64,000 nucleotides of DNA, taken from positions 186,001 to 250,000 of the forward strand of contig NW_026782246.1 in NCBI RefSeq assembly GCF_031769215.1. Direction: 5' to 3'. A program made the translations under genes and the position numbers. The stretch's first letter is position 1, and each line of letters starts with the position of its first letter. Shown here one piece after another: positions 391 through 50,815 of the stretch. This DNA is from Ylistrum balloti. Taxonomy: Eukaryota. Under the pieces are notes generated by a model, which was given only the letters and a program-made list of their open reading frames with translations, had not been told where the DNA came from and did not search any database.

Positions 391-890
391 GCGGCCATCT
401 GATGATGGTGGGCTAATTAAATAGAACAATTACATGTACATTTTAGCGTGTAGACAAAAAACATGTGCGGGAAAAAACACATCGAATACTGAAAATAACA
501 TTTTCTTTCAAACATCTGGTATTAACTATATGTATGTTGTTGTTGATACAATCGCATGTATTTAAATTACATGCATTGTTATATAAAATGATACGGGATT
601 ATGACTTGCTCAAGTCATTATTTCCTAAAATTGATACAAAATAATGTGTACACACACAGGTACCGATCACACTTTATCATTCTTGTTAGTTGCTATTATA
701 TATCGTTCTTTATCATAGGTACTAACGTAGATAATAGTCACTCATAATATGTTAAATATACTTTGAACAGTACCTGCGTATATAATATTGTACACCCCTC
801 CCCCTACAGCAGGAATGACAACAAGACAATTTCAGGGGGGAAACCCACACGCTGTGTACAATATTATGTATTTGCGACATTGAAGCGTAC

Positions 891-1167
891 CTAATCTGTT
901 GAGCCCGTGACTGTAGTGACCCCGATAATCGGCCGACACCAGAAGATCGGCAAGTGCTTCTGCGTGCCCCCTCTTGGTCCCTACCGCCTCCATACACCGC
1001 ACCACATAACTGTGCAACTCCTCCCGGGCGACCACGCCTTGTCCTTGAGACGTCATCTTTCTAAGTGGTGTTAGGATTGAAGCAAACCCGTCCTGTATCA
1101 CTCCGGGACGTTGTAGGGTCAAAAGGGTACGTATGTACGGTGTTATCAACTTAAGTGTCAACCTCAT
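891..1167 (-). CDS. Ldh_2-family oxidoreductase paralog 0, first coding exon only (remaining exons lie left of the window); possible N-terminal mitochondrial presequence
   Basis: ORF reads ...[48 protein letters not shown], with the family motif ADxRGxxSHG. Phase-1 donor (G|GTACGC) at 890, the same position as intron 1 of paralogs A-C. Second Met at 1056 aligns with the starts of A-C. Confidence 0.9.
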
Positions 1168-15970: not shown

Positions 15971-16415
15971 AACGGACATTTCATGTACTTCAGACTGGTA
16001 TATAATTATTTTCATTTAAAATTATCATGTAGCAAGTATTTGTCTTTATGTTAGTGCACGTTTGTTACTAAACCTCTTTATACCAGGAAATTCAGTAAGA
16101 CTATAAGTTGTTATAATGACTTATCATTTATGCGGTTGAAGGTTATTTTCATGTCTCTACATACGGCGAAAATATAAAAAAATGTGGGGGCTAAATGTTG
16201 ACCCAATTGTACCGCTACGGTAAATTAAATTTTTATCAGGTTATTTAGATGAGATAAATCATGAAATATAGAGTATGAATACATCAATGTGACATCTGTG
16301 AAGGATATTGTTGCATGCCACGACAAGTAGTATGTGTAAAAATATGTCCGTTTTTTAATGTCTGGTGTGTTTTTATACTGTGTTGGAGAACAATTCATTC
16401 ATTTTTTACAGCAGC

Positions 16416-19400
16416 ATGGAGGAGACGGGCGAGATCGTCGTGAGTATGGCCGAGCTGGACCGATTTGTTGTCAGCTGTATGATGGCTAGCGGGGCAACCG
16501 AGGAGAGCGCACGGGTTATGTCTGACCTGCTCGTTACCGCGGATTACCGTGGACACTACACTCATGGACTATGTCGTACAGGTAACTTTCAAGATATCCT
16601 ATACATTAAACAACGAATTAACGTTATATATACATCAAACAGCTCCGTAAATCATTACGCAAAATATCGATTAAAATACAGTAAAGTGATATTTTGAGGA
16701 TAAATGAGTTCTTGAAAATGACGTAACGCTGTTTCAAACCTATTGATGTAAGCGTTACATATTGTATCTCATTTTCACCTAACATATTAAAAATGGAATA
16801 GAGCTCGGAAATTTGCAATCTTACGTGATATGTAGTAAATTGAACTTATCAGAGACGATGTTTTAGACTTACATTTACCTTATAGCATTATAATTCTCAG
16901 TTGTAGTTGTCTTGGAAAGGTTGGATATGTGTAATTCCCGCTAAAATGCGAAATGCAAATATAAGTCAATTAAATACATTAGAAGATATGAGGAAAATAT
17001 GTGGTCATTTCTAGTGAGCAGATGGTCAATGTCCGTCTAAGAGTATCCAAATGCTCGTCAATTTGCATGTACAAATCTGCTATCTTATTTTACTTCATAA
17101 ATCAAGTTAGATATCGGAGGTGTGAATTTCATTATAATGCCTTCTGGAGGTAGCGATAATAATAACAGGTACTGATATTTATAGATGCGTACACGGCAGA
17201 CGTAAAGAATGGAGTTACCTGTGGAGGAGGAAAGGAGCCGACTATTATCAAAGAAACCGTGGCAACAGCACTTATCGATGGCAACAATTTATTGGGTATT
17301 TTAGTTATCATATTAGTAATTATTGATTTAGTAATTATCGATTTACTTATTTAGTAAAAAAAATAAAAAGAGACAAATCATACTTACTGTTACCTTTAGT
17401 TTCACAAGAATTTCTTCATGTTTTTTTTTTTCACATTTAAAGCAGATGATCATTTAAATATGAAATTTATTAAGATAGTATTAACAATAATAGAAATGAT
17501 GATTTCATTTTTATATGTATCTGGGCGACAGATAAATATAACATCGACGCATATTCAAAGCATGTTATAGAAGGGTTGTTTGTCTTCAGGACCGGTAGTA
17601 GGAAAATATGCAATGGACGTGGCTATCCAGAAGGCTAAAACGGCCGGTGTTGGCATCGTCACTGTCAGAGGTAAGGATAGTGACATAGGCAACATATTCA
17701 AAATCATCAGAGGATAATTAAGCTTAAATTTCAAATCATATACAGGTTATCAATAACCATTATATCATCATACTGTAGATGGTAACTTCTTTCAGGAAGG
17801 TATCTTAGGGCATGTTACTGAAAGAAATGTTTCTCCGCCGAACATCAAAAAAATAGATAAATGAAACTTTAAAACAGAATTCAATTTTTAAAATGTTGAT
17901 ACAGATAATAGAGGGAACAAATCTGCAAAGGTGACGTCTTTTATAACGGGTCAATTGAAGAAGGAAATATAACTTGAGATTTTTTTAAGTAGGGTAGAAA
18001 TTGATAACGAATCTCACACACCAGACGTGAGCAATGAATGTTTAAACTAAAATAATGCATCTATTTTCTTAACATTAAACAACCTTTTGTTAATGATCGA
18101 ACGTTTTGCATCTCATTTTCTCACGAGGTAATATCTATTCATTTGCCAACAGGTTCCAACCATTTTGGGATAGCTGGCTGGTATAGTCTCCGAGCAACAG
18201 AGCAAGGCCTTTTGGTTAGTAGATTGGACTCTTTATTTCTTTAAATGTATCAACTGCTTATGGTTTTGTTGAACTTTGAGTTCATCATTTCTCTTTCTTT
18301 CAATAACCTGTCAATATAAAGAGCATACATGGTTCTATTTAATCTAATCTTCAATAGTTGTATACACAGATTTCCGCACAAGATACACTGTTAAGAAATA
18401 TACTTATTAATAAGTAGTTTTGATTGATAGCTGGTACGGATATTGCATGGTTAATGTGCAATTAATCTCCTCGAACGTGACTTGTTGAACGAAATCTTAA
18501 ATCCAGTACTGGAAGTTTGAGTATTTGGTTTTAAAGACACAAAATGATCGCATGTTTTGTACAGTATTTCCTTGTAAGCCATATTTGTGTTTCAGGGTAT
18601 ATCAATGACGAATTCCAGCAAAGTAATGATACCTACACGGGCAAAATCAGTAAGACTTTTCTTTACAATAATGTATACTGTTTATCGATAAACAGTAAAA
18701 AAATAACTACATTTTAGGAACTGACTATATGTTCTTCCTTTTAAGTGCGACATATTTTATTCATTTCCTATATCACTTACATGATATCAAAATAATATTG
18801 ATAAAAAATGGTCGAAAATGTAAATAAATATATAAACATTATTTATACTGTATCATGCAGAGGTCTCTTGGCACGAATCCCATCAGCATGGCAGCCCCTG
18901 GTAAGGATAGAGACACCTTCGCACTGGACATGGCTTGCACCACTGTAGCATGGGGAAAGGTAACCTACTAAATGTCACAACATGAATATGAGTCTCATTC
19001 AAAAAATTTCAATAATAGGTCTTTATCATATTAGGTTTTGGTACATGGTCTTCCGAAAAGTCTGTAGTTTACCTCGTTATTATTGAACAGATTGCTTCCA
19101 TTCATGGTCGGAAAACCTAACTAACCTTGGCGTCTAATTTCAATTGTTTATTTGTTCTTTAGGTAATAGCACTATATCACTCCGTGTCCTCCTCTCTCCG
19201 GTCTGATTTTGTCATTAGTTCTTTGTTATTTATTGTGTTTTATGACCGAATAGCTTGAAATGAAGGCGATGAAAGGTGAGGAGCTGCCGAGCGGATGGGG
19301 TTTAGATAAAGATGGAAAGGTAAGGAGAATGATTGATTGCTGTAAACCTAAGTTTTTTTCAGCAACAATAGGAACAATAAAACTGTAATTTGCATAGGAT

Positions 19401-23837: not shown

Positions 23838-26800
23838 ATGGCGGCCGCCGCTTCAGGTGAAATCGTCGTATCCAGAGAAGAAATACATGGATTTGTGATA
23901 CGATGTTTGACGACTGCTGGTGCTGAGGAAACATATGCGAAGACATTTGCGGACTGTTTGATAACTGCTGATTACAGAGGACACTACAGTCATGGTGTAA
24001 ACAGACTAGGTAAGAATATTTATCAAACTGCGATAATTCAATATCGTATGTGGGTCAAACCGACCTCTTGCATTGTTAGCTGGAAGATAATACGCTCTAG
24101 CTTTTATAAACTTATTTTATCTATCTTTCTGGCATGGTGCAATGTGTGCTTGATGCAGGCCATCAAATCAATTCCATATGTTTTTTTTTACAATAATCTA
24201 TCGATATTCCAATATTATTTAACAAATACAGATTTGCACATTTTTATGTTATTACATTAGAATACTTGTCTGTATTTTGAAAGATCTAGTGAACCTATGC
24301 TAGTGGAATTTGCATATTTCCGATAACAAATGTCTGCTCCGATATAATTTTATAAAATATTCTCATTGCCCGCGAAATACGCAAAAATAGTTGGTTTTCG
24401 GTATCCAATAATGTTTTTATAAACAGTAACTGTGTTGTGAACATTTGCTACTTGATACAAAACGGAACTGTGGTTGATTTCCAGTTCCTTCAACTTCAAC
24501 TCTCAAGCCAAATTAAGCATGCATTTCAAAATGTCATATCGTCATGAAAAGATTTTCAGTGTAACTTTTGCTTTGACAAATGAGAGAACCACAAAATGTT
24601 TCTTAAATGGATTATTTCTTAGACTACTTTCATTATCTCGAATGAAAAGTAAACTCGATGCATGTACAACCATATGTCATGTAATAGATATTTTAGAGTA
24701 TGCCAAGTGACTTATAGCCATAACCTGCTGGGGCATGACTGTTGTACTTCTTTCAGGCACAGTATCACTATAGGTTTTTATATATAGAATAAAAAACACA
24801 GATAGTCTGAAATCTTGAAAAATTACAAACCTTTGATCAATGACGAAAATATTATTTTAAGTATCGTTACATAGGTTTAGAATTGTAAAACGCAAAGGTG
24901 ATCGATTCAAGATATCTTTAGAATATTATCTTTAGTATGTAATCGGATGGCAATAAAATTGAACCTATTTTCCAATATATGCTAAATAATATTTCAAGAT
25001 GAAAGGATAAACTGTTGTATTTCTTGCTTTGAAAAAGACCATTAAAAGCGTGAACAGTCATCGTCATCGTCATCGTGTGCAGTTTCTTTTTCATTTTTTA
25101 ACAGAACAAATGATTATCGACATTACCACATTAGGACTGGTGAACTTTCTAATCTAGATTAGATTATTTCGCTCATTTTCCCCTTATCATCTTCAAAGTT
25201 TCAAAATTTTGATCCCTAGCAACACTGTCTAGACATAAAAGGACGAAGGAGCCGTTTGATGCATTTCAATTAATTATTTGGCACTACTGTATCTAATACT
25301 AAATCTGTACTGAAACATACTGTTCACTCATGTGACATTTGTACATTTCTTAATTGTATCCTTCTTTGTCAGAATTTTACATCGAGGAACTTAAAAGGGG
25401 TATACTATGTGGAGGAAAAGGAACAGAACCAACGATTACAAAACAAAACTTAGCTACAGCGCTGGTCAATGGGAACAACTTGTTTGGTACGTGTTGTCGT
25501 CATTGGTTCATAATAGAACAAATGCTTTGACTTGTTACAAACATTTCATAGAATTGTGAATCGGTTAAAGACCGAACGGAAAACAGAAAACTCTTCGACA
25601 AGTATTTCAAATCATTTGATAAAAATATTTTCATCGTTATGGTAGATAAAATTATGTTCATACTTAGTGAGGTTATTTCAGATAGGGTTATGTCAGAAGA
25701 AATCCCAATGTAACAATGGGACCTAAACCAATCTTAAAAGAACGCTCCTCTTACTTCCCCCTGATCTTTATTAAGACTTGTTAATTGTATAATAATATAT
25801 TCGTTTTCTAACTGGAGAGTTATGAAGTTGATCAATAAACAAGAAATACAAGGTAATTTTGTTATCATTCTATCTCAAGCTTCATAAAAATGGTCAATTA
25901 TACAGCAATTCAGACATTTTTTCAATAAACACACGGATAGTGTGGTATTATTTTAATATGCAATTTGCCCTGCAGCTAGCGGGAACCAATGACCAATCAA
26001 CAATTGAAAATGTTTACAACGTACATTTTCATATCTTTGAAATGTGATTTCTTTTTTCCTTTCCGTCGTTGCAGTCATGGTTCCTTAAAATTGGAAGTTT
26101 ATATAACTAGTAGTTGTAAATGGTGATTTAAAAACGACAAAAATATCCTGATATATAAAAACATTAAGATTCATTTAATACAGTGTGCTTAAAACAACTT
26201 TGGAAATTTATCAATTAATTGCCTTTCCATTTATTTGAAAGACCTTATTTCAACTTTCAGTAATCATTCTGTCTTTGTCAAAGTGAGGTGCTTAGGTGCC
26301 TGTCCGTGTATCAGAGGACAATACATGTAAAGCTGCCCTATAATTGTTTTCCTTTTTTTGAAACCAAAAAAGAAAAAAAAACGTGACAAAAGTAACGTGA
26401 CAAATGTAGTAGGATCCCATATTAATCCTTTATGTTTCTAAGGACCTGTTGTCGGGAAATTTTGCATGGAGCTAGCGATAAAGAAAGCAAAGGAAGTCGG
26501 TATCGGAATGGTCACAGCACGAGGTAAGCTTGTATTCTTTGTAAGTGTTCAATTAAAGTATATGTTGTCCATATAGCTGGGCTGCAATAGCTCAGTCGGT
26601 AGAGTTTAGGACTTTGCAACATCACCTGAAGAGCCGAGTTTTTTATGTTTAATTTCCACTTGTAACGGAGTGATTTTCTCAGGAATTCTGAGACCACAGA
26701 CCTTCTGTTAAATTACCATCACGTTAGCTACACAAGTAAGGTAGCTACAGTCAGCATATGTATGCATACTGAATTGATTAAATGATAAATGATTAACGTA

Positions 26801-33601: not shown

Positions 33602-36600
33602 TCACAATTTTGCGGTCTCCGTGTTTTCATAAAACTCTTGTACCTCCTCTTCTGCTGATATATAATTTTTTGTGTCTTTGATGGCATCCACTAAATCTAT
33701 GAAGGTAGGACGACTGATTGGATCCTGTTGCATACACGTCACAATAACTGCATTGAATCTGAAATAAAGTAACGCTTGTTAAGACGTTTGTCTATTTCAC
33801 CTGAATGGCGTATTACATCAATAGTGACGAGGATTCCTTGCGTTATAATACAATCAATTCTATTCCTATTTGCTATAAAAGTACTTTGGAAAACACTATC
33901 TTCATGCCATATGCGTTACTGTTCTTACAAAACGTCATCACAGAATAAGTGATTTAAAATAGTTTGAACAAGCATTAATGATATAGCCCAATGTAAAATG
34001 AGCGTGGTTATTGAAGAAATCAGTATGCTACTTGTAGTATTTCGAAAACGTGAATACATTAAACTGATACAAACTTCTACAACTGCTATATTAGTCAGTT
34101 CATTATAGGAATTGTTGGAATATATGAGATTATAAAAATATATCTATGCTATTAAAATATGGATGATATGCTTCCTATCTAATGAGATTTAAGAAGTTTA
34201 ACTTACTCGTCAGGACATAAGTCGGGTTGACTTAACTGGTGACCGTCCTGAATTGCTGCTTCTAGTTCTGAGTCAGCAATGCCCTCATACGGCTTATAAC
34301 CTTTAAGGTGTCAAAAGGAAACACGTTGTACATGTATTAACAACAGTTAAAGTGAATACCAAATTAATGTTGTGGTGATCAGTATTGTAACGTTTACGTC
34401 TTGGTAGAATATGAGAGGGAAACTATTATCAAGAGGGAAACCAATTACCTCATTCTATTCCTTACGATTTACAGACGAATGATTGGTTATTCGAAAGACA
34501 ATACAACAAAGTTGACATGACCTCTTATAGATATATACCACCTAATACTATTGTGCGAATATGAAAAATGTCTTATGAACGTTTTACGAGATATATTGTA
34601 CATTTTATTTCAAGTATGATCACCTTAACCTATGACAGATTCTAATCAGGTGTAGTATGGAATGAATATTTTTGTGAATATAAACCAAATCTGTCTTAAT
34701 ATTCACGAGATTAAATTTCCTAGGGATTTTATTTCTAACGTGGTTGAGTATGATCCTTGACTTCAATATTTAAATAATGACTGCAGAATCTAATCCGATC
34801 TAGAACCAGGAAAAGCGTGATACTATAAAATCAATAAAACATATTAGCATGTCAAATTCTAAACTTATATTTAATAACACTAGGAGAATGACACTGGGGA
34901 TTTTGGAAGTGCAGCACTTGCTATGTAAATTTTTGTCAATGCAATATCCTGCCATGTATAAAACAAGCGGTGTGATGTTATGATTTAAGTCTGAACTTAA
35001 TCTGTCCAGCGATTCATGAAATATCATGTACACAAGTTTTTCACAAATTAACTCACTGTTACACGCTGACATTCTTCTGAACGCACCTTGTTGCGCACAG
35101 TATTCTGTCCATTCAATTTGTGGGTTGAACTACACGATATCAACGAACTCGTTTGCTAAACACACATGGCGACTGGGGCCTAATTGTGAATTGTGGTTAA
35201 AAAGCTACTTTCAAGTGAATTTCGTTGCTTATAGGCAATTGAGATTTATATAAAAAAAGAATGACACCGAAAAGTTTACTTGAATACGAAGTCAACTGTG
35301 AAAGGAACCCAATTTTTTGACTTGCTCAAATTTGTTTGGTCAATAAGTATTCACTCTGGTAGTTGGGTGGCTAAGAGGAAACCCACTATCCTTTCACCAA
35401 GTCGTCCGGTATTAAATTCCTCGAATTAGCATGAAAAAGGTTATGGGACACAAGTGCGGCCACGTGGGTTTTACTCTCACAGTAAGATCCCTAGTGAGCG
35501 TCAGTCCGGGCAAGCGAACGTGATTATTATTTGTTTGTTTCGCAATTGTTCTAAAATGAATCAAGTTTATGTTCAGTCTATTAGAATACACGGATACAGA
35601 TATAAAACTGTAGGTCTCTTCCAATATTCGACTTGAAACTAAAATGAATAATTGGGAGAGTATTTACATATCTCATTTATACACTGCTGCATTCGAAAAG
35701 GATTTTTTAAAAATACAACTAGCGTCATACCTTGAGAAAATGCTTCCCATATAACGACTCCATACGACCATACATCTGATTTCTCATTTGGCATGGTGTC
35801 ACTTCTGTATCTCTCTGGAGACTGCCATTTCTTCATAAAAAAAATTATGCTTTGACAAAATGTATAATCAATTTGGCAGTAACGTGATTGTGCTGATGAT
35901 ATCGCTAAACTTGTATGTACCTGCACTTCTTGTTACAGAAAAAAGTGCTGATAATGGAAGAGAAAAATAAAACTTCAAATTGTATTTTCTGGATTGTGAA
36001 ACAATTACTTATCTGTTTCATATAAACGCCATGATATTATCATGATATATGTAGGACATGAAAGAGTGGAGCTAGATTTCTCACCCATGATTTCGCAGAT
36101 GGTTCTTCGTCCGCCATCCTTTTTATTTTTGGCTGAAGGTCAGAATTCAGCAGAATGTTAAAAGACGTCAGATTACCGTGGAATATCTGTCAAGCAAGAA
36201 ATTCATACAAACAGTTGTGCAAACCTCACACACAAACAAATTGAAATATTTTGTTATTTTGCAGTATCTAATCTATGATCAACGAGTTATAATACGCTTA
36301 GCCCTTGTGAAAGTACATCTGCAATTGCAGAAAACGATACTGCCTTTAATTGTCTTAGAAATCTAAGAGCGTTCATGTGGGTCTAATGATGTTTTTTAAA
36401 AGGTTGTTGGTCGGTTATCAGCATCCTTCTCCATATCACACTTTCGTCAATATCGAAGATTTATTAGATTAAGTTTTATTCAAGATTTTGTACATGAAAA
36501 ATTTTGCATGAAAACGATTTTTTTAAGAAATACAATGCATGCTCAATTCTAATATATCTGTTTTCAAACTGATCCTGGAAGCCTACAGAATTTCTATATT

Positions 36601-39600
36601 AAAATTAACAGAAAATTTTATTACCTTTCTCGCAACTAAATATTCCATTCCAGAAGCAATTCCGAGAACGATTTCTTGCAGATCATTCCTCTGCACCTGA
36701 TTTCCTTCTGCTTCTAACCAGTTTCCAAATGTCCCGTTCGCACAGTATTCCATGACCAAAGATGGCATTCCTTCGGTAAAAAAGAAAAAAAGAGACAATC
36801 GACTAGAAAGCAATTACTTTCTGTCAAAAGTTCATTGTTGTTCGTAATATTTCTTGTCAAATTATAATACAAGCTGTATCATTATATTAAAACATGCGAA
36901 CGTCTTGGCTTGATCCTGATAAAGAAGTATTGTGGAGCTTTACACAATTATCTTACCTTTACCCTCGTTAATGAAACCGTAATATCGAAGGATATTTGCT
37001 GCCTGTAAAGAATGTGTTTCATGGAACTTGAATAATGTCTTCGCCGCCTCTTCGTAGGCTTGAATTTCTTCTTCTAAATGTCGCAAAAATATTATTGTAA
37101 ACGTGTTGCAAAAATGGTATGAAATCAACACAGAATTATCAACATGTTAACGTTATCATAATTCAAACTTATACTCATCAAAACTAGGGGAAAATATTAA
37201 CAAAAGAATTAGTTACACGCAAGAACAAGTGTTCCGGAACAGTAAGTGTGTTTTTTTTTTAATCAACGACATATGTCATGTAAGTCTTGGTCAATCCAAG
37301 TAAATAACGTCACGTTATCATTTGAACAACGGAATCAACAGACATATTAACAAGCATAAGAGACGTCTAGAATATTTCTCCATTTAATCAAAATGATGAT
37401 CGTAAAAGGTCCACGAAATTTTCATAAACCTGCATCCTTTTAACTCCTGCTTGATCAGTTCTTTGCTAACGAAGTCTTGCATGGAAATCATAATCTTGGG
37501 AACAGGCCCTTGAATATCGAATCAACTGCAATATGTTAACCCCAAAGGTTCGGACTGAAGGAGTGTAGCTATCTAGAAATTCACTATAGGGAAACTGCAA
37601 ATCATCACGCTTATCATGCAGCTATGTGGAAGCTGTCCGTGTTGGTTTCGTTTTAGTGAAGATCTTACCACTAATCCAGTTTTCATGATATCGTCCTGTT
37701 TTTTTTTTTTTTTTTTTAATTTTTTTTATTTGGAAGTATTTTTCACTAAATACTCCTCAGTATACACGTAGTAAAAAGATATACACCGACACGGTTTTAA
37801 TTTTCAAGTTCTCATACGAAGAAAAAATAGCGTATGTAAAACTATTATCATTCGGAAAAGTCAAATGTTAACTTTATCATCTTTAATTGAAAAAATAGCA
37901 AGCAAAGCTGAACAATCTCTTAGAAAAATACGCGGGCTGATATATAAGATTATATTATGCTATGTATATTAGAGCTGAATAACTACTTAACGTATTTCCT
38001 GAGCTCAACCGGTTAGATAATTCGCTTTTGTAACCTCTGATTTTAGGATCCAAAATGCTAATTTCTAGTTTCCAAACCCGAGGAAATTATGTTCTTTAGT
38101 ATCAGTGAGGAATCCTATAACGAAACAGCTGTATGATGCAGTTTCATTCGTATCTTATTCGAATTTTATATAAAAGACATTCAAGCGACGGGCCTCCAGT
38201 ATGTTGTTCATAAGTGTAGCCAACAGCTGCTACAAGTGGACCAAGCCCTAAAATGACCTTAACAGTCCACGGGGCAACTAATCAACAGAATCAATAAAAA
38301 AACAACTATATATAATATTTCTTACCGTCTAGTCCTAAGCTAGTAGTCTTGAAGGCACATGGTTTTTGTCCAATTGTTGATAAACAGCATGTACCGACGT
38401 AGATTGACGTGAACGAGCCTTCCGAAATCATGGTATCTACATTAAAATCGGTGATACCACTGTTAGGTGGCATCTGAATATGGCCATCTAGGTCTTCGTA
38501 AACATCCTCATCGTTGCAATCTTTAATCGCAGTATCCTCGTACGATTCAGAAACATATTGCACAGTAGAGGTCTGTGTTACAAAAATACAATTTGAAACA
38601 TATTCAAAGAAACAACCACGACAGCAAAGTATAGAATGGTATTATAAAACCAGTAAATAAACGAGTACAAATGTTACTACCAACTCCATTAAATAAAGTA
38701 ACATGCCAAAATAACTTACACATGTAGCGAAGTAAATCTTTTGGTACAATCAGGTTTACGAGGACTAGTGTCAAAAGTGACAAATTTGATTCCACATATT
38801 TCTTTCTAATGAATTGACAAGGGTATCAAATACGATTAAAGCTGTTCTTGTAGTGTACGAGATATTAATGGGGAAAATTATCAGGTCTCATAGAGAATTT
38901 CAATGAACAGTTCATGTTATAGTCTAGAAACGGAAATGAGCAAACAGCATTGCAAAGCTTATTTTCCCAACAAATCACTTTTCTACAACCTTTGGTTTAG
39001 ACGAGTTTTTTGTCTTTTCATATCTAGTTGACCCATTGGATTCCTTCCCTGATTCCATAGACTGCTTAGAAAGGTCACTCGATAGGAGGAAGTCCTCAAC
39101 ATGCGTTGTATTTCTTCGCTTTCTCAATATCAGAAATAACCCTATCAGCAAGGCTGAGGCTGCTAGGGACACTGTATAATTAATAAGTCACATTCACTAT
39201 TCTGACAGCCCCAATTTAATAACATAATAATTATAATAAGACTAATCAAAAGTAAACCTAAACAGTTCATTTTACTGTAAATGTATTTGAAGTGTTACCA
39301 AAAAATAACAATAATAATGCAATTTGCACGAGAATCATGACACGGATTATGCCTCGCTTCCTCTGTACGTTTTATTGGTGAAGCATGTCATTTTTCCGCC
39401 TCTAAAGTGATATCCCCACAGTAATTTACTTTGCACCGGCTTTCAATTTGTTTAATTGAAACAAGGGGGAGTATCCAGCAGCAGGCAGAGATTATACTTA
39501 CGTATGACTATAACTACGACATATTTCGTTTCCAGCTTCACAGATCCTGATTGAAAAATAAAAGGAATGAAAACATAATTACTATTTGATGACTTTGGTG

Positions 39601-40728
39601 GAATACAAAAATAGCTTACATTATTGATTAATACGATTGTTGCTTCAGGCAGGAAAACTAATTTATTTTCAGATTTCTGTCATTTTACACCTATTTTGTT
39701 TACAAGAAATATATTTCGTTTGATGTTTTCTAAAGCACTAGATTATGCTTAGTGTTTTTCTTTGATAAATCAAAGCTAAAATGTATGTTACATTCAGATT
39801 AAGCTGCTTGCACAGCATCTTGAATTTGAAGTCATTTATCAATACGCAAAATGAATGTTTGTTATAAACATATGACAAAACTTGTCAAGGTCTTTTGTAT
39901 TTTTGATAATTCTCAAGTGTTAGGCTGAATATCTAAATGTAGCCTAAAAATCAAACTTCGTCAAATTTTTTGGGGAAAATGTTTCTTTCCTTATTGTTTA
40001 AACAAACACGTATTTTATCACCATCGAAATTACGCATCATACATATATTTCTGGCAACATAAAACCATTATGTTGAAAAATACCCAAAACTGTTTGACAG
40101 AAAATGTATGTAATGCAAACAAACAAATAACACATTGGTGTTTTAATTAATAGCTGATACAAATTACCTGTGGTGAAGAGATATTCAAAACTATCACTTG
40201 ATTCGTTTCCATAATGTACGACGAACGTAGCTGCATACTCTGTGCTTGGTAGAAGTCCTATCATTTCGATTTCTGTAACGTTCCTTCTCAAGTCGTGAAA
40301 AACACTTGGCTCCTGACCTTTTCTTCCTATTGTAACTCTTAGTCCTGTTCTTGTATAACAATTCTTCTCGAATGCCCAGACTATTTTCACGCTGTCTGTA
40401 GATAGCGTTGGTGTGTGTATATCAATTGGGCGGGAATCTGTATTAAGTTATAAAAAGTCAATATTGCCATCTATAAAAATCTGAATCCATCGTACAACAT
40501 ACGCATTTAACATGTATGTTACATATAACCATATATGTTGAATAAAATAAAATTTGAATACAAAGATGCATCATACATGCCTGTATGTTAAAATTGCTTC
40601 GTGAAATCTTCGTCATCAACATATCATTTAAACATAGATTGTAACTAATGCCTAAGTCGAAGATTGAACTATCTTTATGATGTAGAAACTTTTGTAAACG
40701 GGTTGACTAGATTGGAATAACTACATTT

Positions 40729-40795
<67 letters not shown>

Positions 40796-43700
40796 CTCTC
40801 TCTCTCTCTCTCATATGAAATACAGATTTGAAATATATATTCGCGTACATACAGATATTTGCTACGTGTTGAAAATTGTAGCAACAATAACACGTAAATA
40901 AATGAGATTTCCTGTCCAGGAATCCATTGACTCGCCTCTGTTGATACGGTTGGTTCATTTTGTGGGAGCGGATATTCCGAAAGCAATGAAATGCAACATC
41001 AGTTTCTTGGATGCATTACCTTTTTACCTTAGATCAAGAACTCGCACAGAATTCCTGTGCCTTTTTATCGGAAGATTACGGTTCTTGAAAATAACTTTGG
41101 TTACATGGTGCTATGATCGTTTTAATAGACGTGTGTGAGAATAGCACAAATGGGTTCTATTTATATCGTGTAAGAAATCGTGTTTTTAATACAAAGAATA
41201 AATCCAAAAATCGTTATTACTTTGTCCATCTGAATGACTTCAATGAAAATTAACGAATTATCTCATTTTTATGCAAATGTTGTCATAACTTATGTCTATC
41301 GCTTGGTTTGATAGCTTTAATAGATTTCAAATTAAGTCTTGTAAGATGATCAGATGGACAGTCGATTTTGTCTGGCATAGACAATGGTCATTCTGGTAGT
41401 ATAATTTTGGTATCTCATTTATATCTAATTTAGAGGTTGCATCATTGCGATGGTATCCATATCCCTGTCACCCAAAGTACATATAAACTCAAACGCCTCT
41501 TATGATGTCTGGGGCGACAGTACCATATGTAGGATAACTGTGCAGGGTAGGAAATGAAATTAATACAAGACGAGAAGGTGGCGTGTTTGCAACAGTAATA
41601 TTAACGAATAACACCATAAATGGTGATAAAGAGGCTTCATTTGTAGGGAAATTAGTAATTGGTATTTATAAACGTAATGTAAGGAAAGAATGCAGTTGCA
41701 TTACTGCTGAACTCAAGTTAATTGCAACAACTACAGCGACGACGACAATGAAAAGATCAACAACAATACAAACAACTGCAGCAACAAAGATTAAACTTGA
41801 ACGGTATTGATGGATTTGATGCTGGATACCACTTGTCATGAAGGATTGTACTAAACCCAACAAACATTTTGATATAGACATAGTGGTGAATCATAAAGCT
41901 GATTCGTCTATTCAGAACTCGCAAATTATACTAGGTATCTATATTTGGTAGCATTATATACATGGGACACATTACTGATGTAACCATTGAAATGAAAGCT
42001 GGGTTTGACTGATTAATGTAATTCTGGAGATTATAATTAGGTTATCATTATTATCATACACATGCTTTAATATCAATAATATTTCAGTTTTTATAATCTA
42101 CCTTCAGAAACCTCTTGTGCGATATTGAAAATATATTAATTAGTATTGAAACATGGTAATTTTTACTAATTAAGTGATATGTCACTATCGCAGGTAAAGG
42201 GGCTGAAATTGACTGCATACGACCATTAGCAATATATGATGACAAAGTAAATTGTAAATAGAACAGATATAATGGACAAATTTGATAATATAATGCAGTA
42301 TGCCAGATTTCTACTTACATTGACGTATGCCACTGAGCGTGGTTGCCTTTCCAATCTAGAAATAAGGAAAACAATTTATCATATGAATACAATTCTATCA
42401 GTGTAATAATGCCTCTTACATAGTTTTAATATAACTCACGTGATCATGTGATAAGAGAATCTTGTATTCGTTTCCATTTCATTTCATTAAGCTTTTATTG
42501 AGATTTATGAAGCTAGCGGCGATTTTTTCGTTTAACCACGTCTGTGGCTCAGAAGCACAAATCTCATATAAATTAGAAACCGGCGTGAGATCCGCTAGAT
42601 ACTCATGAAAAAGTGATCCAAATATTTCTCCCAATTTGTGTGTAGAATATGTAAAAAAAAAATCACTCACTACACTATCATACCACACTACGTCGAATGT
42701 TATAGAATATTGAGTGTACTGTACAGGTACGACTGATTTACAATACTGAAATAAAGAATAAAATAAACCGAAGCATTGGGAAGGGGTTTGGCACATAAAA
42801 CCATACTAAAATTAGATAAAAAAAAAACCTGTTGACCATGAATGCAGTAAAAAAAAAGAGAGAGAATTGCAGAGTTATTTCTTTTCTTCGAATCACATGT
42901 AGCGGAATAAAACAGACTGAAATATCACCAATATATTGCAAGATACCAGGGGCAAACCAAATATGTAGCAAAGAAAAACGTGTATAAGAATTTATTTCCA
43001 GCTTCTACAAATGTTCTCATATTGGAAGTAACTCAGTACGGCCAGATAATAAACTAACTTGACCGCACATTAACCTTCGTTCTTCTTTCTAATTCGCCTT
43101 GGATGAGTGTCAATCGATTAAAATCACCATGAAAAGGTTTATGAAAATGTCAGATATTGCTGCGACCGTTGAATAGTATCAAGAAGTTATTTGACGTCAT
43201 GGTTGTGTACAAAGTTACGTCAATGATTAGTCTAAAATCGCCTCCAAGAATTACTAATGGATAAAGTTGCTCTTCTCATTTGGTGCTGAATGTTAAAGGA
43301 CGGCGTAAATTTCAGTAAATTATCAAACATATTTGGAACATGTATAATGGTATGTTAATACGTATAGATATCGTGAAAGACCACAAATAGCGATGATAGA
43401 TGTCGTCGATGAAGCAGTTGACGGGTTCCCTTCTTGAACGCCTAGTCTTGTGCTTTTTTAACTTCTACAAGGGTATATTACATATGCATCTTTTGTTAAT
43501 ATTTACCCTTTTTAAGTTTGAATCGTTAAGACGTCGTTATTATGTCAATACTTTTGTCTTACCTCCATGGTGAAACTGTTAGCGAGTAGTGCATTGTTTA
43601 ACACTCGGACGAGAAGAGTCAAATCGGCCGTCTGAAGTTCAACCTTTGACATCTGAAGAAGGCAGTGGTCTATATATAGATAATGTTTGAACAGATAACA

Positions 43701-46700
43701 CGTGCCATCCGCAACACATCTGCATTCTTTCACGTTATTGTTACATGTTACCTTTAAAAAAAAAGAACATATAAACATTAAAACGTGTATGTGAAAATAT
43801 ATCGTACAAAGTTGAAGACTCGAAATACCTAGCTCAAGTACATATTTTGTAAATATTCATGTGAATATACATGAAGCGACTCAAACTTGATATCATGACA
43901 TATATATTTACCAGAGATCTTTGTGCTGGGTTAAATGTAGGTAACATACGATATATAAAAACAATGTATTGATTTGTCCATGAAAACTTCATTTAAAATG
44001 AAATAAATAGATAGATACTATAACACAAAATATCACACATTATATCATAGCCACTTATATTGTTTGATATACTGACGGAGTTCGTTCGGTTTCCTGCTGT
44101 GAAGCCCGATGCTAGGAGGCGGTTCGTTTGTTTATCTTGAACATCCCACTCTATCCGAAAAATACCACTGGTTTGATCAGTGGCCTCCATGCTTACTCTA
44201 GTCATTAACGCAAAACCGAAAACGTTACCATGGATACCAAGAGACATATCGTGAAAAAAGCATGTAACATAACTTTACGTCGAAAATCCTAACGGCAAAG
44301 AAAATCATCATGACATACGTACAAGGTATGAAATTTCTGTTGTAAATTGATTTGTTTTCAAAAAGCATTGGTTTTATTTTACTTGAGTATTTTTTTATGA
44401 ATCAAATCTTTTGTCCTAGTTTGATAGAATTTGAGTTTAGATTATGATTATGCTGACATGTAGGTATCTTTTTGATTTTCCTTGTTGATATATCAAAATT
44501 GCATATAACATAAATGATAAACTTTGTTAACAACAACTTTAGTTTGTCATTCACAAATGATTACCTTGTACATAGATGGATTTTGGTTATGTAGCATGCT
44601 TTACTAGATATCATTTTTTTTTAAAAAGTCACCGCCCTCACACAATACAAACAATCTCATAAATTAGCTTTAATATCATTATCATACCCATGTTATAAAT
44701 TTATTCGTTAACTGAAGAGACAAAGAAGTTTGCTCAATAATTCATATTTAAAGATATTATGAGTACCTGGTTGAAAAACTTCCAGGGTATATATTTTTAT
44801 GCATAACTTCAGTATTGCCATATGCGGTTGGTGGACTGGTGTCAAAATATACATATGTAGAATCAACTGATGTATGTCCCATAATGTCATATGCTTTTAT
44901 CCATACTTTGTCCAATGAACCGTCTCCTCGACCACTTGTGAACATTTTACTCAGAGATTCGGGGGCGATTTTATCCATTTGTTTCCAGTTTTCAGTATCA
45001 GGTTCATCGTCAATCCTAGACGCAGCCAGCTGACGCACGTAATCGAACCTAATTATGCCTCTAACGTTTGGTATTGGCGAAAGTTGGATTTTACCATCAT
45101 GGTCATCGTAAGTAGGTATGACAGAACTATTGTCTACAAGAATAGGATCTCCGACGATCCGGGATAGAAAATGACCTTTGTCATGTATAGAATTTACAAA
45201 ATGGTCTTTCCATCTGACAGAAACAGCTGTATTGTTTTTCTGCCAATGATAATTCGATTCTTTGGAAGCACTAGAAAAATACAGTTTACTGGTATTGCTT
45301 ATGACTATTTTAGAGGTGTTATCGTAAAGTACAAAGCGTCGTGCGTAATTTCTATTCGAGGCGTTGTCCTCAACCATCAGGAGGATGGCATAAACACCAG
45401 GCTCGGAGGGGAGGTAATCGTAATCTGTTTGTGTTATGTTTGTTGTAATAGATAAACATGAATCAACAGGTTGTCGAAGATTCCCTGTCTGATCCGGCAC
45501 CAATTTGTAAATACGTAAGACGTAGTGGATTATCCCAGATAAATTGTCTTCCCATCCTCTCCATTCGATATGAATCCGTCCCTAGAAAAAAGTCATTATC
45601 GTTACTTATATATTTTTCTTTTTAATAAAGTCAAATCATGATAATAGTCAAAACAAGCAATTACATATATATATAAAAATCAAGGCCAAACTTTTTAAAA
45701 TTTTGCACGATTAACACAAAGTTTGAAAAAAACTAAATCGTATTAGTGGAGCGTAAATCATCATGAATATTAAAAATCATTATGGGAATTTTACCTGCCT
45801 ATAAAGTGTAAGTAATATGTATGTCTAAAACATTTCCACTACCTTTGAAATTTCTGGTGAAACAATAAGTGGATGACATGAATTATCCCTCTCTACACAA
45901 TGCTGTGGTGGTTGGAAATCAAACCCGATGTTCATGGTTTTGGAAAACTGATCTGAGCGATTCCTTCTGTCATTGAGACTGCTATAGCTATAGTAAGACC
46001 TGATTTGAAAGCTCAGTCTGAAATATGCAAAAAAAAAAAAAAAAGGAAAAACAATGTTTGAACTTTTCATTCTAGTTCTCGACATGTTGTTTAAAGTATA
46101 TACAGTTATCATAGTAAAATGAAGTGAAATGTATGATATCTTCTTCAGTACATTAACATTTTCAACTTTATGATATTCAAGTGCAAGCAAAAACACTATT
46201 TATTGTCCCAGTCCAACTTTTATAGCTAAATGTGTAAATTAAATCCTGAACCGTATATTAGGACAGTTTCATCGCACTATTTTATCATCATTTTTGCAGT
46301 GATGACAATTTCTTTCTAATCAATAGATACATTGAAATAATAGTTGACTGTAGATATTGTAAAAAACGTTTTTTATCACCATGGAACCTGCTTACATATC
46401 ACCATGATCAATGAAACGGTCGAATGTTGAAAGAGAACAAACAGTTTCTTCAATGGTACTGTTCTCAACACAACGAAGATTGATGTCTGTCAGTGAATCG
46501 GTTCTTGCAAAACTACCTGTGAAATATTTGTAAGGAAAGGATTCTTTGTATTTGAAAGTTATGAATGTATGTTTCTAAAATCCTGTGGTGGATAGGGGAT
46601 GGTAACTATTAACGGAACATGATAAAACATTTTATCGATGTATAATAACAATAATGAATGTATACTCTTTAACTCAAAAGTATTTTGCCAGGATGATATC

Positions 46701-49700
46701 GTCGTTGTATAAATAAATTTAACGTCACAAGTCGTTTACAAACATTATTGACAACAAAACGAACAGGGCTGACAGAGATATACAGAGCCCTCCATCTTTT
46801 TTCGTCTTTTAAGGGATTCGTGGTTTATATTGTATGCAAGCTTCTATATAAAAAATGTTAGCAGTATTTTTTTTTACCTTTAACCTTTTTCTATGACCAC
46901 CAAAATATAATATGTTGTAGAACATGATAATGTGATGTTATGATATGAACATGAATAAAATAAGTCAATGGGTTCATGCATGCATGGACGCAGAAGCAAA
47001 TTGAGTACCATAAATATACTTTATAACTTACTATTTGCTTTCCGAAAAGACATTGATGTTCTTGTTTGTCCTGTCCTGTAAAAGACATGGAAGTATTTCA
47101 TTATCTGTGGAAAATGTTGTTCTGCGATTGTTACCGAGAAGCGATTGAATCCGTTCCTGTTGGACCAGGCGTGATTCTTGTTTATTTTGATTTTCAAAAG
47201 GGTCTTGTTATTTGCCCTGTTGATTTGTTCCAGTACTGCGATAGGCATTATCTCTCCTAATTCGGAGTTGTTCGGGACTGTGGAAAAACATAAATCATGA
47301 TATGTATTTGAATTGTGTCGATTCATAAAATGAACTCGTGTATAGTTTGAAAGAAGTATCTCTTAAACATATATCTAATTGCAATATGTATTTACTTCAT
47401 ATTTAACACATTAATGATAGATAAGTTCATCAAGGTAAGTAAACCGTTAGTTTTTATTACACAACTAACTTGCTTTTTTATGTGAAATAACTACGTCATA
47501 TGACATTGTCCTTACACCGGATTAAGTATCACACAGGCCAAGGTAGCCTCAATCACTAACATTGCCCGATTACAAACAAACATTTTCCACCCCAAAAACT
47601 TCATCAACGTTATTTAAATGGAAGGCTAACCAATACTTACCACATGTCGGCATACCTGAGGAAAAATAGCGACTAAATCCAGGAGTACAGATACAGGTTA
47701 TGTGATTGGCATTACTGAGTTCACAGAAATCTACAATCATAAAAGTTACTGGCTATATATTTACATTAAATCATCCAGTTAAGGTAAAGGTTGTCTATGT
47801 TAAATCGTTGCGTTTTACCAAACGTATAGTGTATTTTTTGCGGAAGTAATGGGATGTTCACGTCATTAATTTCATTTTAATGGTGTCTTACGGTTTTATT
47901 ATCTCCATTAAATTAAAATGGGAAATAAAGGAAATGAAAAAATCAGAACACAACAACCCAACACAAGTTTGCAATGAGAAGTTCTATTGAAGGAACACTA
48001 TCTCTGGTTTAAGTAACCGACGTTTGATATGAAAGCTTAATGGAACGTTATGAAGCCTCAGGTTCAAATGTTGAACAAAATACATACAAACAATTAGCAC
48101 CTTTCTCAACAGATATAGAATCAGTAAAAATCATAGTTAAATGATTAATTAAACCGCATTACATAGCTTTTTGTCATTTTATGACCTGCTAGTGATGTTA
48201 AGTGCTTTCATTGTTGAGGCAAAAGAAGCAAATCAAATTGTGTTGCAATAGATGCAAAATCCAGATTAGGAGTTTTAAAATGTAACAATTAATTGCTTTG
48301 TATAAAGTTCGAGTATTGAAGTATTAATTTCAACAGAAAAGACTTTCCTTAACAGTATTGTCGGTATGAACGTTTTGTTAATGATATGCACATTATGATT
48401 TTCTTTTTCATTTCAACCAAATGTTTTATCCTTATGACATAAACGGATTTTGGAATCACGCAGTCAGAATAGTATATAGTGTGAAAGTTGTGTTCTTATA
48501 TATACATATTCTTATACATAAAGTCCAAATACCTTGTTTTTGAATTGTAGAAGCATAAATATTTATAAGAAACTTATAAAGTACCAACCAAATAGCATAT
48601 ATTGAAAATTTTTCAGGCTTATATTAATTCAGAATCTTTTAATTTGAAGATTATATGTGGTTTTCTATACTTACTGGCACATGATCCGTTGGTTAAACAA
48701 TATGTATGTGATGGACAAGGATCGCAGGCATCTGATTTTTAAAATTGTCATATTATTAACTTATCTTAGTTCAAAGCAAAGTAAATGAACAAACATTTCG
48801 ATTATTGTCTATACACGAAAAAATGGATATTGACTTCCGAAAATAAAAAGTGTATTTTCGGTATGAAGAACTGTGGAAATATATAGTAGTAACCAACATT
48901 CTGTCACGACATGATACTACTTGTTGTTAACTGGTTGATAATCGTTGGTTACATCCGTATTTCTTAGTCATAAATACAAGATATATAAGCATCTGATCCA
49001 AGGAATCAAAATGATTCAGATTATTAGGATTCGTGTTGAGTTTAGAATGTAATTCATTACGTATACTGCAGCTTCCATTACTGTCCTCTATATATCCTTC
49101 AGCACATCTTGTTACCTCTTCAAACCGTCGTACTGGTAAAACCTCAGATCGACAACAACTAAAGGATAGAAATATAAAAACAAGACAACATCATCAAAGG
49201 TAGAGGAAATGAAATATATCAAAAAAGAAAAGAGAAAAGGATAAACATTTTGGTTGTTGGGTTGGTTGGTTGAAGGAAGGATGGAAGGAAGGATGGAAGG
49301 AAGAAAGCCAACTAAGAAAGCAACCAACTAACAGAGTAAACAAACAAACAAAACGAATAGTAAGGACATTCTTTTACAGAAACTTACTAAACTGTAGACA
49401 CTTAGAAACACTTGTCCAAAAACGTCCCTAAGAATGCTGCAAATTTTTGGGAAGAATCAGAATAATTATTTTTACAATCGCCGTTTCGTAGTTTTGTCTG
49501 ACATCTAGCGTCTTTATAAAACTAACCCAAAAGTTGAACAAATTTTTAACCAACGGACGAACGGACATACGCAAAAGTTATCCCATAATACATTTATCGA
49601 AATTTGGGAATCGCATGACAATCATGTAGCTCACATATGATATTCTATATTTTTTCATTTAAGTTCGAATAAGTTGGGTTAACCTCGGAAGACGTCGCGA

Positions 49701-50815
49701 AGAAACAAAGCATAGTGATTGCCAATAATATGGTTAAAAAATGAATAGTTTACGCGACAAGCGTTTGTGGACAAGAATTCACTCACGCCAGTTGCTGTCT
49801 GGTGGTGTCACACATTACACTCCATTCCACACACTGAGATGAATCTTCTATTATCTCCTTCCACGCTGTTTCAGTGTACCTAAACAAATTTCGGTCAGAA
49901 TAAGCCTGATTATGAAAGTGTTGCAATTTACATCAACATTCAAAATACATTTTAATAGCTTTCGCGGACCAAAACATTCTTCGTTTGATATATATATTTG
50001 TATTAATCTTAATTCATATTCAATGAAATTTGAATTGTGAACAAATGAAAGATTTTCACCGAGCCCCTGAAAAGGTACAGAAATAAGACCAAAAGGGTAA
50101 GCGTTTTCGTCTTCACCGCCAACACCCTGCATGACAAATTTGGTCTATCCAAGTAATTGACATTCCCAAAAGAGAACAGTGTCTACAACAACAGAACCAC
50201 TGGGCGAATACTAATTTTAAAATCCTTATTCAACATCACTAGTGTGAGTAAAGAGCTCATTTTGTCGACATTAACACTTATTCGGTTTAAGATAACGAAG
50301 ATGCTAAATCATTAATCTTAAGTTCAATATCTATTGTACAACACAATATTTTGTCCAGTACTGTAAAAGCGTATATTTTCGTTGAGCTCCAAGTTCGTGG
50401 TTTTACAAAACTTGCATTATATTTGGCACGTGTTTTCGTGGATAAATCTTGCTCACCAAATCTACTAGTACCTTTATCCATGTCATGGTTTTTTCAATTT
50501 ATCGCTTAATGGACATATACATTCGTATTCATCAATTCCACGAAAATAAATTCCCCATGAAAATCATTGACTATGTGATAAATATAGAATATTTGCTTTC
50601 TTCTATAATCAAGAAGTGTTCAACCTCCTCTACATGTTGTCGTTTTATATGTAGCTTACAAATTGATATTTCTTAAATCAGAAATAATCTATACATTTCG
50701 TCGTCATTTTTTTTATAGATATAGTAGAAACGAATCATTACCCTGTCGAGGCACTAGCTCCAGAAAAGAAGATTAGTATGACGGTAACCACAAGGTGAAT
50801 TCCTCTGCTGCTCAT
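33602..50815 (-). CDS. Single-pass receptor tyrosine (pseudo)kinase with large Cys-rich/EGF-like, beta-sandwich and FN3 ectodomain; 23 exons, about 1234 aa (short form of exon 13)
   Basis: Exons 5' to 3': 50815-50742 (signal peptide MSSRGIHLVVTVILIFFSGASAS), 50182-50117, 49879-49787, 49158-49061, 48731-48675, 47730-47641 (EGF-like), 47277-47032, 46516-46396, 46017-45843, 45581-44767, 44197-44077, 43751-43563, 42745-42671 (or to 42440), 42355-42319, 40437-40168 (FN3), 39546-39502 and 39171-38990 (TM YVVVIVILSLAASALLIGLFLIL-RKRR), 38572-38326, 37073-36957, 36770-36625, 35920-35731, 34300-34207, 33758-33602. Phases are consistent throughout. Kinase motifs LVMEY, GIASGMEYL, KWQSPE, KSDVWSYGVVIWE, DPISRPTF. 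Confidence 0.8.
38101..38137 (+). ncRNA. Hammerhead ribozyme motif, copy 3 (core C3 mutated, stem II partly deleted)
   Basis: ATCA-GTGAGGA-ATCCTATAAC-GAAA-CAGCTG-TA-TGAT(GCAGTTTC). It lies in a receptor-gene intron on the antisense strand. Confidence 0.5.
40733..40812 (+). repeat. (CT)n microsatellite with one TATA interruption
   Basis: Read directly from the sequence. Confidence 0.97.
49253..49305 (+). repeat. (GTTG)n/(GGAA)n simple repeat
   Basis: GTTGTTGGGTTGGTTGGTTGAAGGAAGGATGGAAGGAAGGATGGAAGGAAG. Confidence 0.85.
50358..50580. mobile_element. MITE-like remnant (TACTGT-type left end; TTTTCGTGG/CCACGAAAA inverted subterminal motifs)
   Basis: TACTGTAAAAGCGTATATTTTCGTTG...GTTCGTGG on the left; CCACGAAAATAAATTCCCCATGAAAAT on the right. 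Confidence 0.45.

Follow-up and report, generated by a model that had tools for sequence, protein, structure and literature searches.

A 64,000-nucleotide stretch of the Ylistrum balloti genome (contig NW_026782246.1, positions 186,001 to 250,000; here called the window) holds a receptor gene of 22 exons on its minus strand (50815-33602). The gene very probably encodes an intact, conserved receptor pseudokinase that belongs to a mollusc family. From N- to C-terminus the product has a signal peptide, a Cys-rich EGF-like N-terminus, several FN3-like modules, one transmembrane helix and a tyrosine-kinase-fold domain. Judged by its sequence, this last domain is devoid of the catalytic residues and retains the residues that hold the fold, and it is predicted to be unable to transfer phosphate. 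On the fuller reading, which we consider likely, the gene is a selectively maintained type I membrane receptor with a dead kinase fold, is a fast-evolved sister of the family, and signals as a scaffold.

The spliced model was built from the window DNA, using as guide the junctions of two scallop orthologs that were mapped exactly on their own DNA. These are Mizuhopecten yessoensis XP_021376219.1 (LOC110465001, 1194 amino acids) and Argopecten irradians XP_069110954.1 (1223 amino acids), the two best matches to exon 9. The window model has a coding sequence of 3540 nucleotides (1179 amino acids), zero internal stop codons and GT-AG boundaries at 21/21 junctions. Every exon, including exon 19, is collinear with both orthologs, with 59% identity to Mizuhopecten and 52% to Argopecten, and 21/21 intron phases are identical in the three genes. 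The joined window protein was used for local alignment, the tree and the substitution ratios, while the fold model is that of the ortholog's domain and Pfam was run on single window exons or open reading frames (ORFs). A first-pass annotation had described six in-frame kinase exons between 38572 and 33602. Both limits are real boundaries, 38572 being the acceptor of the first kinase exon and 33602 the end of the stop codon, but the gene extends to 50815. Likewise, the frame and the splice sites are intact as described, but the kinase region consists of seven exons (16-22), all GT-AG and compatible in phase, of which exon 19 had been overlooked.

Coordinates are on the minus strand unless otherwise given. 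Exon 16 (38326-38572) is the first kinase exon and lies in a stop-to-stop frame at 38641-38309. It carries the juxtamembrane tyrosine motifs QYVSESYED and DVYEDLD, the Gly-loop ISEGSFTS and the β3 lysine (CAFK), as placed by frames, junctions and alignment. Exon 17 (36957-37073, frame 37146-36943) runs from αC to β4 with AYEEAAKTL (junctions and alignment), and exon 18 (36625-36770, frame 36813-36586) supplies β5, the hinge and αD-αE (LVMEYCANG...GMEYLVARK; junctions). Exon 20 (35731-35830), the fifth kinase exon, contains KWQSPE, in which SPE stands for APE, followed by SDVWSYGVVIWE in αF. The αG region (YKPYEGIADSELEAAIQDGHQLSQPDLCPD) is encoded by exon 21 (34207-34300, in the frame with PYEG...LCPDE at 34310-34206). 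Exon 22 (33602-33758) encodes αH-αI (CMQQDPISRPTF) and the C-terminal tail with FYENTET; its frame with RPTF (33778-33605) ends at the TGA stop codon at 33604-33602. These last two exons were placed by frames and junctions. The Gly-loop ISEGSFTSIY with CAFK, AYEEAAKTL, and the C-lobe motifs KWQSPE, SDVWSYG and RPTF had been pointed out in the first-pass annotation, and all were located in these exons, SDVWSYG in exon 20. A second, paralogous kinase copy was looked for within the window and none was found.

The window protein and its two orthologs were compared column by column with ten reference tyrosine kinases, using HMMER and MAFFT alignments for the αC-Glu column. Residues are given in the order window, Mizuhopecten, Argopecten. 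The first glycine of the Gly-loop is S/S/S and the third is T/A/F, so that two of three glycines are gone in the window. The β3 lysine is kept in all three. The αC glutamate is A/V/N, and both alignments put the alanine of AYEEAAKTL in this column, as had been proposed. HRD is replaced by HGN/HGN/HGS; the aspartate found in all ten references is thus Asn in the window and Mizuhopecten and Ser in Argopecten. The window retains the His and Asn of the catalytic loop, the latter being N/N/H. DFG is replaced by RMA/GIG/GFE, which places Arg in the window and Gly in both orthologs at the aspartate position. The APE glutamate, the αF aspartate and the αH-I arginine are kept in the references, the window and both orthologs. 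The activation segment has 18 residues in all three proteins versus 30-40 in the ten references, in agreement with the short segment noted earlier.

The catalytic loop is encoded by exon 19 (36085-36186). This exon encodes IFHGNLTSFNILLNSDLQPKIKRMADEEPSAKSW between the acceptor ...cttgacag and the donor gtgaga, with phase 0 at either end; the stop-to-stop frame in which this catalytic-loop-like sequence is read (36189-36043) was left unused in the first-pass annotation. Its loop reads IFHGNLTSFNILL...KIKRMADEE, with HGN for HRD, KIKRMA for KIxDFG, and the first part of the activation segment. Both orthologs have an exon of the same phase at this place, with FHGNLTSFN in the window and in Mizuhopecten and FHGSLTSFH in Argopecten. 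Previously VHTSLA had been taken as the catalytic loop and CQIDY as the sequence at the DFG position. Both are present in the DNA, at 35926-35831, within the intron between exons 19 and 20, where the reading frame is by chance open into exon 20 (stop-to-stop frame 35932-35642, VHTSLA...CQIDY...KWQSPE...SDVWSYG). The stretch was assigned to the intron, and exon 19 accepted as real, because of three observations. The same frame upstream of exon 20 has many stop codons in the Mizuhopecten and Argopecten loci. In the orthologs the exon 20 acceptor directly precedes (R)WQAPE, equivalent to the good acceptor tttttatgaag/AAATGGCAG (KWQSPE) at 35830 in the window. Finally, in the loop region the window aligns with Mizuhopecten at the nucleotide level only over 36193-36116 and 35792-35729, in exons 19 and 20. 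A different exon that supplied HRD and DFG had been named as grounds for rejecting the pseudokinase. This proved half true. Another exon does supply the loop, but it too is without both aspartates, and the receptor, on these residues, is still a pseudokinase, though on different evidence from that first put forward.

In a six-exon model, or a real alternative isoform, exon 18 would be spliced onto an acceptor at 35926, so that 36186-36085 is left out and VHTSLA...CQIDY forms the loop. The DNA does offer an acceptor-like gtgcag/GTACAT in phase 0, from which the frame in Ylistrum stays open for 32 codons, as far as 35831. Against such a splice stand the ortholog stop codons in that frame and the lack of nucleotide or peptide similarity to the orthologs there, as well as the skipped exon itself, which is highly conserved and matches in its splice phases across three genera and the main family introduced below. 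It would also remove the β6 to β8 core of the kinase fold. We felt that this alternative was extremely unlikely. Exon 20 itself has two in-frame acceptors 9 nucleotides apart, at 35830 and 35821 (gaag/AAATGGCAG/TCT), the upstream one corresponding to the ortholog position. Use of the downstream acceptor would remove Lys-Trp-Gln from the already short activation segment.

The kinase fold was checked with profiles and a structural model, as the first-pass annotation had proposed, and both confirmed it. Taken singly, exons 18 and 20 scored 34 and 36.4 bits with PF07714 (PK_Tyr_Ser-Thr), above the curated cut-off of 23.1, and the full-length ortholog P0002 scored 147 bits over profile positions 5-257. 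AlphaFold2 modelled the ortholog domain P0151:885-1175 as a bilobal kinase, with a predicted local distance difference test (pLDDT) score of 88.5 and a predicted template modelling score (pTM) of 0.87. The model superimposed on Eph kinase structures with template modelling (TM) scores of 0.77-0.89. A confidently predicted kinase fold, together with the retained β3 lysine and catalytic-loop Asn, could also belong to an atypical active kinase, or another ATP-using enzyme, whose catalytic residues have been relocated. WNK is a precedent for a kinase with a moved lysine. However, both aspartates, two loop glycines and the αC-Glu column have all been lost together, and the replacements vary among the three orthologs (N/N/S, R/G/G and A/V/N), with His for the catalytic-loop Asn in Argopecten. 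Variable replacements point to a released active-site constraint rather than to a relocated site, and we regard an active enzyme as quite unlikely.

A degenerate domain could instead reflect a decaying or unexpressed pseudogene in which the open frame is residual. The degeneracy of the catalytic motifs, which differ between orthologs, the long stem branch of the scallop clade and the fact that no RNA run of Ylistrum holds the locus would fit this explanation. The ratio of nonsynonymous to synonymous substitution rates (dN/dS), previously suggested as a check for decay, does not. Between the window and Mizuhopecten dN/dS was 0.24 over the full length (1161 codons, dS 1.2), 0.23 in the kinase-like domain and 0.23 in the ectodomain, and against Argopecten it was 0.12-0.16 with dS saturated; across the comparisons dS is saturated (1.1-3.2), so the ratios are rough. 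A value of ∼0.24 is far from the value near 1 expected of a decaying pseudogene, and since the kinase-like domain is constrained like the ectodomain, the gene is not decaying. Furthermore, 22/22 exons are open, all splice sites are canonical, the structural kinase residues are retained in all three species and the locus is syntenic in two further genera. A pseudogene is therefore very unlikely. One independent DNA sequencing run, ∼1% divergent from the window, confirmed the sequence over 36359-39400. Its differences in exons are substitutions, and its indels are 6/6 in introns, too few for significance.

Exon 9 was used to find relatives of the receptor. Its ORF (45581-44760, 274 amino acids) was searched against 1.84 billion cluster representatives and produced 388 relatives at E≤0.001. 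The two best are the orthologs. The other long matches are proteins of 1000-1300 amino acids with strong PF07714 scores from oysters, clams, mussels, pearl oysters, scallops and gastropods. A word search with the ortholog kinase region found Argopecten as the only close kin, the window's own protein being absent from the database, while a word search with the domain of an oyster member yielded 445 clusters at E≤1e-30. Among 24 aligned representatives of this main family, the third loop Gly is Ala in 24/24, the β3 Lys is kept in 24/24, the αC Glu is Lys in 24/24 and the HRD Asp is Arg, Lys or His in 24/24. The DFG Asp is Gly in 23/24, with a gap in the remaining one. In a motif scan of 108 further proteins, 103 combined H-x-[RKH] with a DFG position devoid of Asp. 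No loop could be recognised in two, and the remaining 3/108 are unrelated JAK-like or insect kinases with 32-35% identity. Bivalve and gastropod genomes contain many family paralogs each. Examples with HRR...GFG kinase-like domains are Crassostrea virginica LOC111112206, Y. balloti LOC132565501 and Ruditapes philippinarum LOC132751969. Database names for the family are 'uncharacterized' or automatic misnomers such as FGFR3, Tie-1, Kit, Ret-like, c-src, CSK, FER-like and ephrin receptor-like. According to Pfam, some members have a VWA domain and EGF repeats instead of FN3-like modules.

The window gene and the HRR...GFG family have in common the ectodomain modules (exon 9 matches with E 1e-39 to 1e-47), a single transmembrane helix and a tyrosine-kinase fold without either catalytic aspartate. 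The main-family Ylistrum gene P0004 also has 22 exons, and its 21/21 intron phases are identical to those of the window gene. Of its six kinase-domain introns, four share an alignment column with those of the scallop orthologs, and the remaining two are close by, where the alignment has gaps. The kinase-like domains themselves differ, with only ∼30% identity. Where the family has αC Lys, the scallop lineage has A/V/N; HRR is matched by HGN/HGS and GFGP by RMA/GIG/GFE, and the activation segment has a median of 27.5 residues in the family versus 18 in the scallop lineage. The window, with Ala, H-G-N and R-M-A, thus departs from the family signature of αC Lys, H-[RK]-[RK] and G-F-G-P, and for this reason it was classified as a divergent sister lineage rather than a typical member. 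An undescribed class of invertebrate receptor pseudokinases had been postulated from this gene. It is a pseudokinase receptor for which we found no paper, but it represents a divergent lineage of a large family already in the protein databases.

The kinase-domain phylogeny that had been called for was then provided by a maximum likelihood (ML) tree of 41 kinase domains. The window and the two orthologs formed one clade (100/100) on a stem of 2.19 substitutions per site, and the main family was its sister group (98/94), with Eph placed separately, although reference sampling was thin. An older Mizuhopecten annotation splits the gene in two and names the kinase half 'Ephrin type-B receptor 1-B'. 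Eph kinases were considered because, among solved structures, their domains (EphB1, EphA3 and EphA2) come nearest to that of the ortholog (127 bits, ∼31% identity). The Eph comparison set consisted of vertebrate and tunicate Eph sequences. Eph kinases differ from the scallop gene in retaining HRD, DFG and a long, tyrosine-containing activation loop, and in their ectodomain, SAM domain and intron map.

The receptor might then be a chimera in which a family ectodomain acquired a dead Eph-type kinase by exon shuffling. Such an origin would account for the ortholog domain's best solved-structure matches, which by both sequence and fold are all Eph kinases, for the Eph-like strings NVLLNSNL.PK and juxtamembrane Y-x4-YED, and for an approximately unbiased (AU) test that did not reject grouping of the scallop clade with Eph kinases (p = 0.10). 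It is at odds with the 98/94 ML support for the scallop clade plus family and with the intron record, since 21/21 phases match the main-family gene and 4/6 kinase-domain introns share a column with it, whereas a fish Eph gene is without three of the six kinase-domain introns and has three others. Nor were the ephrin-binding, Cys-rich and SAM domains (PF01404, PF25599 and PF00536) matched in the window exons or the orthologs, while a true Eph receptor shows all of them. We felt that the gene structures settle the placement better than the tree or the AU test, and a chimera is accordingly very improbable. From ectodomain, intron phases and ML tree together, we conclude that the gene is most probably a scallop-restricted, fast-evolved paralog lineage within a large receptor family of bivalves and gastropods.

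Several points weigh against the reading of the gene as a maintained, catalytically dead scaffold receptor of this family. The branch leading to the scallop clade is very long, at 2.19 substitutions per site, and a grouping of this clade with Eph kinases survived the AU test. The dN/dS values are rough owing to saturated dS, and motif conservation is based on three known orthologous sequences. Among the RNA runs checked for the locus none holds it, the sole run that does being DNA. Some kinases without canonical residues bind ATP or catalyse. The ligand, the partner kinase and the tyrosine phosphorylation are predicted components only.

The ectodomain was compared with those of known receptor pseudokinases. 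Exon 9 (44767-45581) is a 272-codon module that ends with FDTSPP. AlphaFold2 modelled it as tandem FN3-like β-sandwiches (pLDDT 89.9), and its best matches in the PDB are tandem FN3 domains, generic and with low TM-scores. Pfam scans of the window ectodomain ORFs gave nothing above noise, so the EMI domain assigned in the first-pass annotation has no Pfam match behind it. The same annotation held the ectodomain to be unlike those of PTK7, ROR, RYK and ERBB3, and this agrees with our Pfam scans. The modules of PTK7/CCK4 (Ig), RYK (WIF), ROR (Ig-Frizzled-Kringle) and ERBB3 (receptor-L/furin-like) were absent from the window ectodomain ORFs and from the full-length ortholog P0002. PTK7/CCK4/Otk, RYK/Derailed, ROR, ERBB3, EphA10 and EphB6 resemble the scallop receptor in being single-pass proteins with a conserved tyrosine-kinase fold and lost catalytic residues. 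The scallop gene differs from these vertebrate and insect receptors in having no Ig, WIF, Frizzled/Kringle, receptor-L/furin or ephrin-binding domain, and in belonging to a different lineage that is mollusc-restricted as far as seen. The loss of the active site in the scallop receptor is probably more complete than the losses known for PTK7, RYK, ROR, ERBB3, EphA10 and EphB6. The role generally ascribed to these vertebrate and insect pseudokinases is that of signalling scaffolds or co-receptors (PMC7586955, PMC8141879).

The earlier picture of a single-pass receptor with a degenerate tyrosine-kinase-type domain is borne out by HGN, RMA, the degenerate Gly-loop and the preserved frame and splice sites, and a mode of signalling can be suggested for it. 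Acidic tyrosine motifs are conserved in the three orthologs, namely Y-x4-YE(D/E) and DVYEDLD in the juxtamembrane region and YENT in the tail, and Tyr-rich strings occur at both of these places in the main family as well. YENT agrees with the pYxN sequence that the Grb2 SH2 domain prefers. Binding of a ligand or partner would fall to the ectodomain, and the dead kinase fold would act as a dimerisation or allosteric scaffold that signals without catalysis, as for PTK7, RYK, ROR and ERBB3. An associated active kinase may then phosphorylate the YVSESYED, DVYEDLD and YENT motifs in trans, and the phosphorylated tyrosines may recruit SH2 adaptors. Trans-phosphorylation with SH2 docking was preferred because of the conserved acidic tyrosine motifs, the fit of YENT and the Tyr-rich strings in the family. 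Even so, we hold this docking-site mechanism to be possible and somewhat short of an even chance.

A broader and more doubtful proposal is that the gene belongs to a mollusc-wide, heavily expanded pseudokinase class whose ancestor swapped three acidic catalytic residues and repurposed the pocket, after which the scallop HGN lineage kept the fold only. The ancestral swaps would have been αC Glu to Lys, HRD Asp to Arg, Lys or His and DFG Asp to Gly, accompanied by the third loop Gly to Ala. Invariant replacements of this kind would mean a new job for the pocket, for example binding of an anionic ligand or a phospho-motif. Later, the constraint on the pocket would have been lost in the scallop HGN lineage, with the fold alone kept as a scaffold.

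To our knowledge, receptor pseudokinases are few and have been studied intensively in vertebrates and flies (PTK7, RYK, ROR and ERBB3). The present results add a whole lineage-specific receptor pseudokinase family from bivalves and gastropods, which annotation hides as 'uncharacterized' or under the labels FGFR, Tie, Kit, FER and CSK. Because of this mislabelling, counts of active tyrosine kinases in the kinomes of oyster and other molluscs may be inflated. No publication describing the family was found in the full texts consulted, which included the oyster kinome (PMC4883820), KiNext (PMC11515245), the holozoan tyrosine kinome (PMC8662651), the Lymnaea genome (PMC11589774) and a membrane-proteome survey (PMC5620054), but not Kwon et al. 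2019. Receptor kinases are expanded in lophotrochozoans according to the membrane-proteome survey (PMC5620054). The oyster kinome paper counts eight FER kinases, more than in any other tyrosine-kinase subfamily, and lists five kinases as 'TK-unique' (PMC4883820). Some of these FER or 'TK-unique' kinases may belong to the mollusc pseudokinase family. The two branches constitute a natural experiment, one with a strictly conserved, remodelled pocket and the other, in scallops, with a drifting pocket and a retained fold. Comparing them could reveal why a dead kinase domain is retained.

The remaining exons encode the ectodomain and the membrane-spanning region, and unless otherwise given they were placed by ortholog collinearity and junctions. 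Exon 1 (50742-50815) contains the start codon and signal peptide (MSSRGIHLVVTVILIFFSGASAS...); it is collinear with residues 1-25 of the Mizuhopecten ortholog and has a GT-AG junction in phase 2. The N-terminal ectodomain continues in exon 2 (49787-49879), which encodes Cys, and the Cys-rich exon 3 (49061-49158). EGF-like Cys-rich pieces are encoded by exon 4 (48675-48731, ACDPCPSHTYCLTNGSCA), for which the neighbouring window ORFs scanned gave no Pfam match, and exon 5 (47656-47730, FCELSNANHITCICTPGFS). Exon 6 (47032-47253), whose 5' end is less certain than any other boundary in the model, exon 7 (46396-46516) and exon 8 (45843-46017) precede exon 9, which is followed by exon 10 (44077-44197) and the Cys-containing exon 11 (43563-43751), all ectodomain. 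Exon 12 (42319-42355, IGKATTLSGIRQ) is a micro-exon of 37 nucleotides with 83% identity to both orthologs and phases 0 and 1 as in the orthologs. Next to it, intron 11 contains a 108-codon open frame (42805-42482). Exon 13 (40168-40437) encodes a membrane-proximal FN3-like domain with 68% identity to the ortholog; the window ORF had no Pfam match, and family members match fn3 weakly. Exon 14 (39502-39546, SVKLETKYVVVIVI) is small and lies directly before the membrane, as placed by ortholog alignment and junctions. Exon 15 (38987-39171) encodes the transmembrane helix (LSLAASALLIGLFLIL), an RKRR stop-transfer sequence and the start of the juxtamembrane region, as read from the DNA and its junctions; its donor is at 38987 or 38990, each in phase.

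The neighbourhood of the gene is also shared. A C1q gene adjoins the receptor in the window and in Mizuhopecten, and C1q and Ldh_2 genes are among the neighbours at the ortholog loci. In the window, a complete C1q domain exon lies upstream of the receptor gene at 53944-53522 (PF00386, E 1.4e-19), and Mizuhopecten has C1q genes at the same position. Ldh_2 is the malate/L-lactate dehydrogenase family 2. Genes of this type flank the receptor in both ortholog loci, and window ORFs with the same motif are found at lower coordinates. Three of these, at 832-1167 (minus strand), 16365-16697 (plus strand) and 23838-24260 (plus strand), resemble first exons of tandem Ldh_2-type paralogs. They were recognised by the shared motif ADYRGHY(S/T)HG, and later exons lie near 11196 and 30690. 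Two overlapping ORFs of 89 and 131 amino acids at 13951-14731 (minus strand) were judged by eye to be putative transposase remnants. The window is AT-rich, with 32-36% GC. Within the receptor introns, 37440-37636 and 38031-38227 are dispersed repeats, marked in the DNA run by a very high contig depth (>1000) and by numerous loose ends.

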